The position numbers were made by a program, and so were the translations under genes. The notes under the pieces are model-generated. The model did not search any database. It was not told the DNA's origin and saw nothing but the letters and a program-made list of their open reading frames with translations. Positions 34,611 to 34,828 of a DNA stretch of 64,000 nt are shown here, piece by piece. The stretch lies in sequence record NC_014636.1. One strand, given 5' to 3'. Position 1 is the first letter of the stretch, and every line of letters begins with the position of its first letter.

Positions 34611-34674
34611 GGAATGAACTTTTAAGGCATATTTCCAATAATTTGCTTTTTAAGTTGTTTGCTGAACTCATTCC
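34611..34674 (-). ncRNA. short Y-like RNA E (64 nt)
   Basis: GGAAUGA-GUUCAGCAAAC ... AAAAG-UUCAUUCC. Confidence 0.7.
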
Positions 34675-34685
34675 AATCTTTGTTT

Positions 34686-34714
34686 ACTATACACTACTAT
34701 TTAGTGAGTGTAAA
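34686..34714 (-). promoter_or_regulatory. early promoter with embedded late box upstream of RNA E
   Basis: TTTACA-N17-TATAGT; ACTAAATA at 34698-34705. Confidence 0.7.
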
Positions 34715-34738
34715 CAAAGACTTCTTAATTTTTTAAAC

Positions 34739-34792
34739 AGGCTGACTTTTGGTTTCTATCCGCAAGAAAGTTTTGATTGCTGAACGCAGCCT
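34739..34792 (-). ncRNA. short Y-like RNA D (54 nt)
   Basis: AGGCUG-CGUUCAGCAAUC ... AAAAGU-CAGCCU. Confidence 0.7.
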
Positions 34793-34799
34793 TAAAATC

Positions 34800-34828
34800 A
34801 TCTTAACACATCATCCATGTGTTGTAAA
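34800..34828 (-). promoter_or_regulatory. early promoter upstream of RNA D
   Basis: GTTTACA-N17-TAAGAT; predicted +1 near 34793, at the start of the RNA D stem. Confidence 0.7.

Follow-up and report, generated by a model that had tools for sequence, protein, structure and literature searches.

Two short RNAs of Aeromonas phage phiAS5, here called D and E, and a phage gene for a Ro60-like ring protein are the subject of this study. The window, that is, the whole stretch of DNA that was analyzed, is the last 64 kb (64,000 nucleotides, nt) of the phage genome (NC_014636; Straboviridae, Chrysonvirus; T4-like), and a window position equals the position in the NC_014636 record minus 161268. D and E are located on the minus strand within an 820-nt non-coding gap (34349-35168), which is surrounded by a co-oriented cluster of about 23 tRNA genes. 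No open reading frame (ORF) of 50 or more amino acids (aa) is found on either strand of 34611-34828. The gap is kept in five related Aeromonas phages, phiWae14, avDM12-TAAL, Aeh1, PX29, and Ah1, at 74-97% identity; together with phiAS5, they are the six Aeh1-like phages referred to below as the six phages. Comparative evidence suggests that D and E are two copies of a widespread small-RNA family of phages and prophages, coupled to the gene for the Ro60-like protein.

RNA D (34792-34739, minus strand) is 54 nt long and covers 34736..34793 with its AA and GUU flanks. Its ends are joined by a 6-bp stem, formed by AGGCUG (34792-34787) and CAGCCU (34744-34739); the motif UUCAGCAA is located at 34784-34777, and a 5-bp apical hairpin with the invariant loop UGCGGAU is located at 34769-34753. 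RNA E (34674-34611, minus strand) is 64 nt long and covers 34608..34679 with a predicted 5-nt leader and a GUU tail. Its 7-bp stem pairs GGAAUGA (34674-34668) with UCAUUCC (34617-34611), and UUCAGCAA is located at 34666-34659. In both RNAs, UUCAGCAA begins 1-2 nt 3' of the 5' arm, the 3' side is A-rich, AAAAGU is found just before the 3' arm, and GU(U) just after it. An earlier reading of this DNA, made from its letters only (the sequence-only reading), had proposed D and E with lengths of 54 and 64 nt; a minus-strand reading combined with a helix-plus-motif scan reproduced both exactly. Among the six phages, the orthologs of D show a compensatory change of a stem pair from C:G to G:C, and their apical stem changes from UUUCU/AGAAA to UUUUC/GAAAA around the invariant loop UGCGGAU. 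In E of PX29, two stem pairs are changed from G:C to A:U with compensation. This covariation among phages of 74-97% identity indicates that the stems of D and E are selected in their present location.

The gene for the Ro60-like protein is located at 22479..23912 (minus strand) and encodes 477 aa. A Pfam search of the protein returned DUF2828, DUF7788, and a weak vWA match, and no TROVE match. The DxSxS motif is present as DVSGSM at the start of the vWA domain, and its residues D270, S272, and S274 are invariant among the homologs. A phmmer search against the PDB gave no sequence match; therefore, a structure prediction was needed. The AlphaFold2 (AF2) model, based on 33 homologs, has a predicted local distance difference test score (pLDDT) of 87.5 and a predicted template modeling score (pTM) of 0.88, and consists of a HEAT-repeat ring followed by a C-terminal vWA domain with a MIDAS, an adhesion site dependent on a metal ion. 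When the model was compared with the PDB by Foldseek, the top nine matches were all Ro60/TROVE structures, among them the Ro60 of Thermus phage phiLo, and the matches were full length (E=2.7e-9 to 5e-7, template modeling score 0.51-0.63). The ring protein that the sequence-only reading had invoked is thus present, as the predicted structure of this DUF2828/DUF7788 protein matches Ro60 over its full length. Judged from the predicted structure, the phiAS5 protein is probably a distant structural relative of Ro60, and orthology is not implied.

The gene family is very common. It was found at no fewer than 554 loci in IMG/VR, at no fewer than 593 loci in bacterial and archaeal genomes and metagenome-assembled genomes (MAGs), and in 701 records of isolated phages, including FelixO1-like, KVP40-like, Campylobacter, Listeria, and Staphylococcus phages. 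Some of the mycobacteriophage homologs are annotated as "Ro-like RNA binding protein". DUF2828 proteins have also been reported in plants and mimivirus-like sequences, and the literature found on DUF2828 consists of plant and tardigrade/mimivirus work, with none found on phage RNAs. Three other genes in the same window encode RlaP (an RNA-ligase-associated Pol-beta nucleotidyltransferase; 5563-6516), a NAMPT-type phosphoribosyltransferase (2591-4033), and an ADP-ribosylglycohydrolase (12952-13905), all on the minus strand. These RNA-repair and nicotinamide adenine dinucleotide (NAD)-related genes may share a pathway with the Ro-like protein.

The module shared by D and E was first found elsewhere by a pattern scan of IMG/VR combined with a helix filter, on unrelated contigs and with quite different stems. 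A covariance model, R1, was built from 33 RNAs of unrelated contigs, none of which came from Aeh1-like phages. When R1 was run on the 64-kb window with filters off, its top two matches were D (43.9 bits, E=5.7e-9) and E (31.7 bits, E=1e-5). Members of the family start with 5' (A)AG and have a 6-7 bp stem that joins their ends; U-U-(A/U)-C-A-G-C-A-A follows directly after the 5' arm, and a variable, A/U-rich interior, the 3' arm, and C-N-G(U) complete the RNA. The 79 distinct phage modules have a median length of 55 nt and a GC content of 35%. Their first stem base is G in 78 cases, and C-N-G follows the stem in 77. Their 11-nt motif has C6, G8, C9, A10, and A11 without exception, U4 in 72/76, and A5 in 53/76. 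D and E had been described as minimal RNAs, and this description needs a change; with a family median of 55 nt, the short form is the standard form and not a cut-down state.

The stem of the family is well supported. In the R1 alignment of viral loci, 99.2% of cells have the stem paired, and double-sided changes number 174. Its covariation score is 0.87, compared with 0.19 after shuffling and no more than 0.17 in slid controls, although the alignment is model-fitted and the counts come in part from seeds chosen for having a stem. A control that relied on the motif only avoids this circularity: on the strand of the Ro-like gene, 60% of 186 motifs were accompanied by a helix versus 19% in a reversed-arm control, and on the opposite strand the value for 60 motifs was 25%, equal to the 25% of the reversed-arm control. 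These comparative data bear on the simplest alternative, namely that D and E are chance hairpins beside promoter-like hexamers and that no functional RNA exists. Single-sequence folding energies agree with such an explanation, being ordinary for both D (z = -0.2) and E (z = -0.8). However, the E-values obtained with an independent model, the covariation, and a strand bias of 93:0 (see below) effectively refute it, and it is hardly credible.

The helix-plus-motif module is also common to larger RNAs of phiAS5. RNA F (34373..34477, minus strand) is 105 nt long and has the stem GGAACA/UGUUCC and UUUCAGCAA; its interior forms three hairpins, including a T-arm-like GGGGUUCGACUCCC. At least three stem positions of F are compensated among the six phages, and phiWae14 has UUACAGCAA there. 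RNA G (31888..32037, minus strand; about 150 nt), located between tRNA-Asp and tRNA-Ala, has an 8-bp stem, GGAUUCAC/GUGAAUCC, followed by UACAGCAA and an interior of about 130 nt. Both F and G appear as partial R1 matches. The tRNA-like RNAs B (20020-19900) and C (19885-19768), which span 19768..20020 on the minus strand, 2.5-2.7 kb downstream of the Ro-like gene, each have, where the anticodon arm should be, a module that is capped by a hairpin and circularly permuted. The presence of the module in D, E, F, B, and C therefore suggests one unit combined with different "cargo" domains, of which D and E have almost none. Three tRNA-like RNAs in all are located downstream of the Ro-like gene (19768-20153, minus strand), the third of which, A, has two T-arm-like hairpins. 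A, B, and C may be the three tRNA pseudogenes that tRNAscan gave for Aeh1 (Nolan 2006, PMC1524935).

Beyond phiAS5, the RNA family is closely linked to the DUF2828/DUF7788 gene. On two contigs (L012 and L035), tandem modules are located directly upstream of an ORF whose N-terminus matches the product of phiAS5 22479-23912. R1 was then applied to both strands of 80 viral loci (934 kb, E<=0.01), which, like the other loci surveyed, had been selected on the gene beforehand. All 93 matches that it gave share the strand of the gene, and most of them flank it closely on the upstream or the downstream side; one or more were present in 61 of the 80 loci. The proteins of the bacterial and MAG loci are only 33-43% identical, and there the gene strand carried 36 of 38 matches, mostly just upstream. 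Since 14 of 22 bacterial and MAG loci, fetched with up to about 3 kb on each side, contained no tRNA, the RNA follows the gene and not the tRNAs. Taken together, the RNA family accompanies this gene at hundreds of loci. One phage contig, L187, which has four modules beside its Ro-like gene, also encodes a two-piece (permuted) tmRNA (3782-4124, plus strand).

In KVP40-like phages (L126/L127 5962-6009), the module encloses the Shine-Dalgarno sequence and the AUG of the Ro-like gene, and in other lineages (L135, L148, L131, and L129) it ends 1-3 nt before the ribosome-binding site of that gene. This location is expected if the Ro-like protein binds the module, and it suggests possible autogenous translational control. 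It may also be asked whether the module is mainly a cis-regulatory operator of the Ro-like mRNA, in which case the copies in the tRNA cluster of phiAS5 would be decoys or non-functional duplicates. Such a role agrees with the KVP40-like and other phages in which a module borders or surrounds the ribosome-binding site and start codon, and with the location of most matches within a few hundred nt upstream of the Ro-like gene. On the other hand, many loci have the module in 2-4 tandem copies or have it downstream of the gene, and D and E have their own conserved promoters in addition to stem covariation among the six phages. An operator function as the main role is thus considered very unlikely.

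The promoters of D and E are of the T4 early type, for which GTTTAC is the -35 hallmark, including in Aeh1 (Nolan 2006, PMC1524935). The early promoter of D (34800..34829, minus strand) consists of GTTTACA (34829-34823), a 17-nt spacer, and TAAGAT (34805-34800); that of E (34686..34715, minus strand) consists of GTTTACA (34715-34709), a 17-nt spacer, and TATAGT (34691-34686). Both have the features of T4-type early (sigma-70) promoters, that is, GTTTAC, a spacer of about 17 nt, and TAnnnT, and both are conserved in relatives. In the D promoter, the two hexamers and the distance of 17 nt between them are kept throughout the six phages, and the spacer sequence has diverged; the spacer of the E promoter is near-invariant, with one variable position. 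In the window, GTTTAC-N17-19-TANNNT was found 11 times versus 1.6 expected, and 10/11 were on the minus strand. The predicted transcription start (+1) of D is A34793, the first A of AAGG, at the 5' end of the RNA family, and that of E is at about 34679, 5 nt before the stem. These predictions agree with the earlier claim of GTTTACA-N17 promoters with a +1 at or near the start of each helix.

A late box before E had been claimed as well, and an exact CTAAATA is indeed located at 34704-34698 (minus strand), inside the spacer of the E early promoter, with a predicted late +1 at about 34692. The late consensus of Aeh1 is CTAAATA, beginning at -12 (Nolan 2006, PMC1524935). The box of E is this Aeh1-type heptamer, invariant in the six phages, and not TATAAATA of T4, which was found once in the window. 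Several ORF starts (12840, 43043, 45770, and 58221), mostly in the tail/baseplate gene block, likewise have CTAAATA about 20-32 nt upstream. For D, the search for a late box gave only CAUAAAUA, about 50 nt upstream of the D start, which is not a CTAAATA match. A second GTTTAC-type early promoter with CTAAATA in its spacer is located at 35386-35415 (minus strand), upstream of the ORF 35169-35390; therefore, the nested early/late design recurs. A third promoter-like site, GTTTACT-N17-TATCAT, is found in 34842-34903 (minus strand), just upstream of the D promoter, and could be an extra start for D. It is followed by a hairpin, the sequence of which is not the same in phiAS5 as in the other phages, and AUAAAUAA comes next.

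The E promoter is enclosed by an 11-bp inverted repeat (34677..34720, minus strand; 34720-34710 with 34687-34677) that contains an inner 5-bp repeat, CACUA/UAGUG. The fold of 34585-34720 has a z of -2.4, and the inverted repeat is almost unchanged in the six phages, so no covariation signal is available from it. The spacers of the D (34806-34822) and E (34692-34708) promoters are themselves palindromic, and the D spacer palindrome in phiAS5 differs from that in Aeh1, PX29, and Ah1. The inverted repeat and the spacer palindromes may be DNA operators, RNA hairpins, or coincidence.

Each of the two RNAs had been assigned a dedicated promoter. The conserved early promoters support one part of this claim, and the word "dedicated" goes too far, as no terminator follows D or E. 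The gene for tRNA-Asn(GUU) (34502..34584, minus strand) starts 26 nt past the 3' arm of E with no terminator between, and it is probably co-transcribed with E. A transcript of D would pass through the E promoter region, and F lies past tRNA-Asn. Because terminators are lacking, E is only 26 nt from tRNA-Asn, and D runs into the E promoter, polycistronic transcription followed by processing is likely. In other phages, up to four modules are packed at a spacing of 0-15 nt (for example, L182 5721-5972), which is too tight for promoters; processing must therefore occur there. Processing from polycistronic precursors is probably the rule for the RNA family, and the promoters of D and E probably serve the downstream tRNA as well.

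This arrangement also raises the question of whether the modules, instead of being stable RNAs that act in trans, serve in cis to punctuate or process the polycistronic transcripts of the tRNA cluster, for example as nuclease entry sites or spacers, with the promoters simply being those of the tRNA operon. The tRNA cluster contains all of D, E, F, and G, E is close to tRNA-Asn, the terminators are missing, tandem arrays elsewhere force processing, and early promoters 5' to tRNA genes were noted in the work on Aeh1 (Nolan 2006, PMC1524935). However, the 14 of 22 prophage and MAG loci in which no tRNA was fetched have the module beside the Ro-like gene. The tRNA cluster of T4 has no module, and T4 is not among the homolog matches listed for the gene in the phage collection. 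In addition, the predicted +1 coincides with the conserved 5' AAG of the family, and the combination of a covarying stem with a conserved single-stranded 9-nt motif at its side is typical of a site that binds protein. A purely cis-acting processing role is thus regarded as quite unlikely.

A probability of roughly 0.6 is given to the reading that D and E are two copies of a widespread phage and prophage small-RNA family coupled to the Ro60-like protein gene; the family is apparently previously undescribed. Several points weigh against this reading, including the model-fitted alignment and the stem-selected seeds mentioned above. D and E are on the same strand as the Ro-like gene but 10.7-12.3 kb away, inside the tRNA cluster, and the linkage to the gene could reflect a shared pathway rather than direct binding. 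The discrete species of 54 and 64 nt are assumed, given that no terminator was found after either RNA. D and E do not contain the Ro/Rsr motif GNCGAA, or GGUCCGA, the animal Ro recognition motif, and their conserved motif is UUCAGCAA. Finally, the supplementary promoter tables for Aeh1 (Nolan 2006) have no entry at the computed coordinates of the Aeh1 orthologs, although the genome versions may differ.

The absence of the Ro motif from D and E and their distance from the gene in phiAS5 would also agree with another binding partner, such as host PNPase, Hfq, ProQ, or an RNA recognition motif (RRM) protein like Rnp1A, with the Ro-like gene being a pathway neighbor. In Dictyostelium, whose Class I RNAs are compared with the phage family below, Rnp1A is the only protein proven to bind one of these RNAs directly (PMC7919456). 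Nevertheless, the linkage is strand-specific and adjacent across proteins of only 30-48% identity and many host phyla, and in several lineages the modules overlap the site where translation of the Ro-like gene itself starts. Apart from the Ro-like gene, none was noticed to travel with the modules, though no systematic analysis was made. Another factor as the true partner is therefore judged unlikely, and coupling to the Ro60-like protein is preferred.

Under the preferred coupling of D and E to the Ro60-like protein, the following mechanism can be proposed. Host sigma-70 RNA polymerase would transcribe D and E from the T4-type early promoters of phiAS5, and E would also be transcribed from the CTAAATA late promoter. 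D and E would be the first elements of transcripts continuing into E, tRNA-Asn, and F, and the 3' ends may be made by RNase P cleavage at the tRNA and by exonuclease trimming back to the stem. The phage Ro60-like protein would dock on the stem and the single-stranded CAGCAA motif, in the way that Ro60 docks on the stem of Y RNAs. Cargo-less copies such as D and E may occupy or regulate the Ro60-like protein; the role of gates or sponges for the ring protein, which the sequence-only reading had put forward, is hypothetical and is a reasonable hypothesis. Copies fused to tRNA-like domains (B, C, and F) would bring the Ro60-like protein to tRNA-handling enzymes. The overall role may be the surveillance or repair of RNA, probably tRNA, during infection.

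Two other features are found beside the region of D, E, and F. A structured RNA of about 260 nt (34905-35168, minus strand), directly upstream of the D region, is kept in 6/6 Aeh1-like phages. Its consensus fold has an energy of -74 kcal/mol, compensatory double changes are present in 20/69 predicted pairs, and it includes a UUCG-capped hairpin; it gave no Rfam match at E<=10. A 180-aa ORF (33806-34348, minus strand) is located between tRNA-Ile and F in phiAS5. It is not present at that site in avDM12, Aeh1, PX29, or Ah1 and has no significant Pfam domain, and it may be a mobile insertion.

Several known systems resemble D and E in part. The T4 species 1 and 2 RNAs (rnaC and rnaD) are also small RNAs inside a T4-type tRNA cluster, on the tRNA strand; unlike D and E, they are 139 and 119 nt long. 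Homology with them was rejected, as the best match of R1 in the T4 tRNA region reached 10.9 bits. RNA repeats of the type III toxin-antitoxin kind were rejected because the stems are not the same in sequence from copy to copy and because the protein resembles Ro60 and is not a nuclease.

The named Ro60-Y systems include bacterial Rsr with Yrn1, YrlA, and YrlB, and the phage phiLo Ro60 with Yrl1 and Yrl2. The Ro60 of Thermus phage phiLo binds these two Y-like RNAs, which are encoded upstream of its gene (PMC12135203). Bacterial Y RNAs have the Rsr motif GNCGAAN0-1G near the 5' end and are encoded on the same strand as the Ro60 gene, within about 4 kb of it (Chen 2014, PMC4201824). The phage systems studied here are similar in that a gene for a ring-shaped protein with a TROVE fold (predicted here) and a vWA domain is accompanied by one to several small RNAs on the same strand. 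The RNA family as a whole shows the proximity of about 4 kb, whereas D and E are 10.7-12.3 kb from the gene. As in Y RNAs, the 5' and 3' ends form a stem and a conserved motif of the 5' strand lies beside it; some copies have tRNA-like domains, as in YrlA, and some are short, as in YrlB. Occurrence in phages and a context of RNA-repair or tRNA genes are further shared features.

The differences are also clear. The DUF2828/DUF7788 protein is only 12-17% identical to the solved Ro60 structures. The RNA motif is UU(A/U)CAGCAA and not GNCGAA/GGUCCGA, and the family is about 55 nt long versus 80-130 nt for Y RNAs; D and E, at 54 and 64 nt, differ likewise from Y RNAs, which have a large internal loop. 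No Y_RNA or YrlA match was found in 34340-35180 at E<=10, and Rfam scans (gathering, E<=10) of the window and of 34340-35180 gave tRNAs only, with two weak YrlA matches that overlap tRNA genes. The term "Y-like RNAs" used in the sequence-only reading thus holds as a functional analogy, given the Ro60-fold protein and its linked RNAs; as a statement of family membership it fails on motif, models, and length. The coupling of D and E to this protein would give an RNA partner to a very common, uncharacterized phage protein family, and the Ro60-Y RNA principle would then cover a second lineage of protein and RNA. Such ribonucleoproteins would also be placed in the tRNA clusters of phages, a location that points to the surveillance or repair of tRNA during infection.

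The closest described RNAs to the phage family are the Class I RNAs of Dictyostelium (RF01414), which were reportedly described in 2004 by Aspegren and in 2011 by Avesson. RF01414 is the only Rfam family that repeatedly touches phage modules, with nine same-strand matches in one 5-kb stretch of contig L182; all are sub-threshold, and the best phage relative reaches 29.8 bits versus a gathering score of 41.5. D and E themselves gave no RF01414 match at E<=10 and did not reach the gathering threshold of 41.5 bits. Class I RNAs are 42-65 nt long with a GC content of 32-41%, and their ends are joined by a 6-bp stem whose first G is invariant (Kjellin 2021, PMC7919456). They start with AAG, end with CUGU, and have a variable interior; beside the 5' arm they carry an 11-nt motif, CCUUACAGCAA, in which U3, C6, C9, A10, and A11 are invariant (PMC7919456). 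The phage modules share their length, G-first end stem, A/U-rich variable interior, AAG start, CUGU end, GC content of about 35%, and many paralogs with different stems per genome. The exact 11-mer CCUUACAGCAA is present in 16/79 distinct phage copies. D and E have the length and stem of this class (54 and 64 nt; covarying stems of 6 and 7 bp). Compared with CCUUACAGCAA, they keep C6, A7, G8, C9, A10, and A11 and have G at position 3 and U instead of A at position 5. The genomic sequence of D fits the Class I ends, with AAG at 34793-34791 and CUGU at 34740-34737, and E has UUG...CCGU. Relative to the Class I-like phage modules, D and E thus look like divergent members.

Unlike the phage RNAs, the Dictyostelium genes use the eukaryotic upstream promoter element DUSE, and the known binder of their RNAs is Rnp1A. 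Class I RNAs have been reported as unique to Dictyostelia (Kjellin et al., PMC7919456). It is possible, and tentatively suggested here as an idea with appreciably less than even odds, that the phage and prophage RNAs and the Dictyostelium Class I RNAs form one homologous class, with the DUF2828/DUF7788 Ro60-like protein as its universal partner. If so, Class I RNAs would not be a dictyostelid invention tied to multicellularity but the Y-RNA equivalent of a second widespread Ro60-like branch, possibly exchanged between viruses and amoebae. The near-identical architecture provides a testable partner hypothesis for the Class I RNAs, which are abundant, developmentally important, and mechanistically unexplained since 2004.

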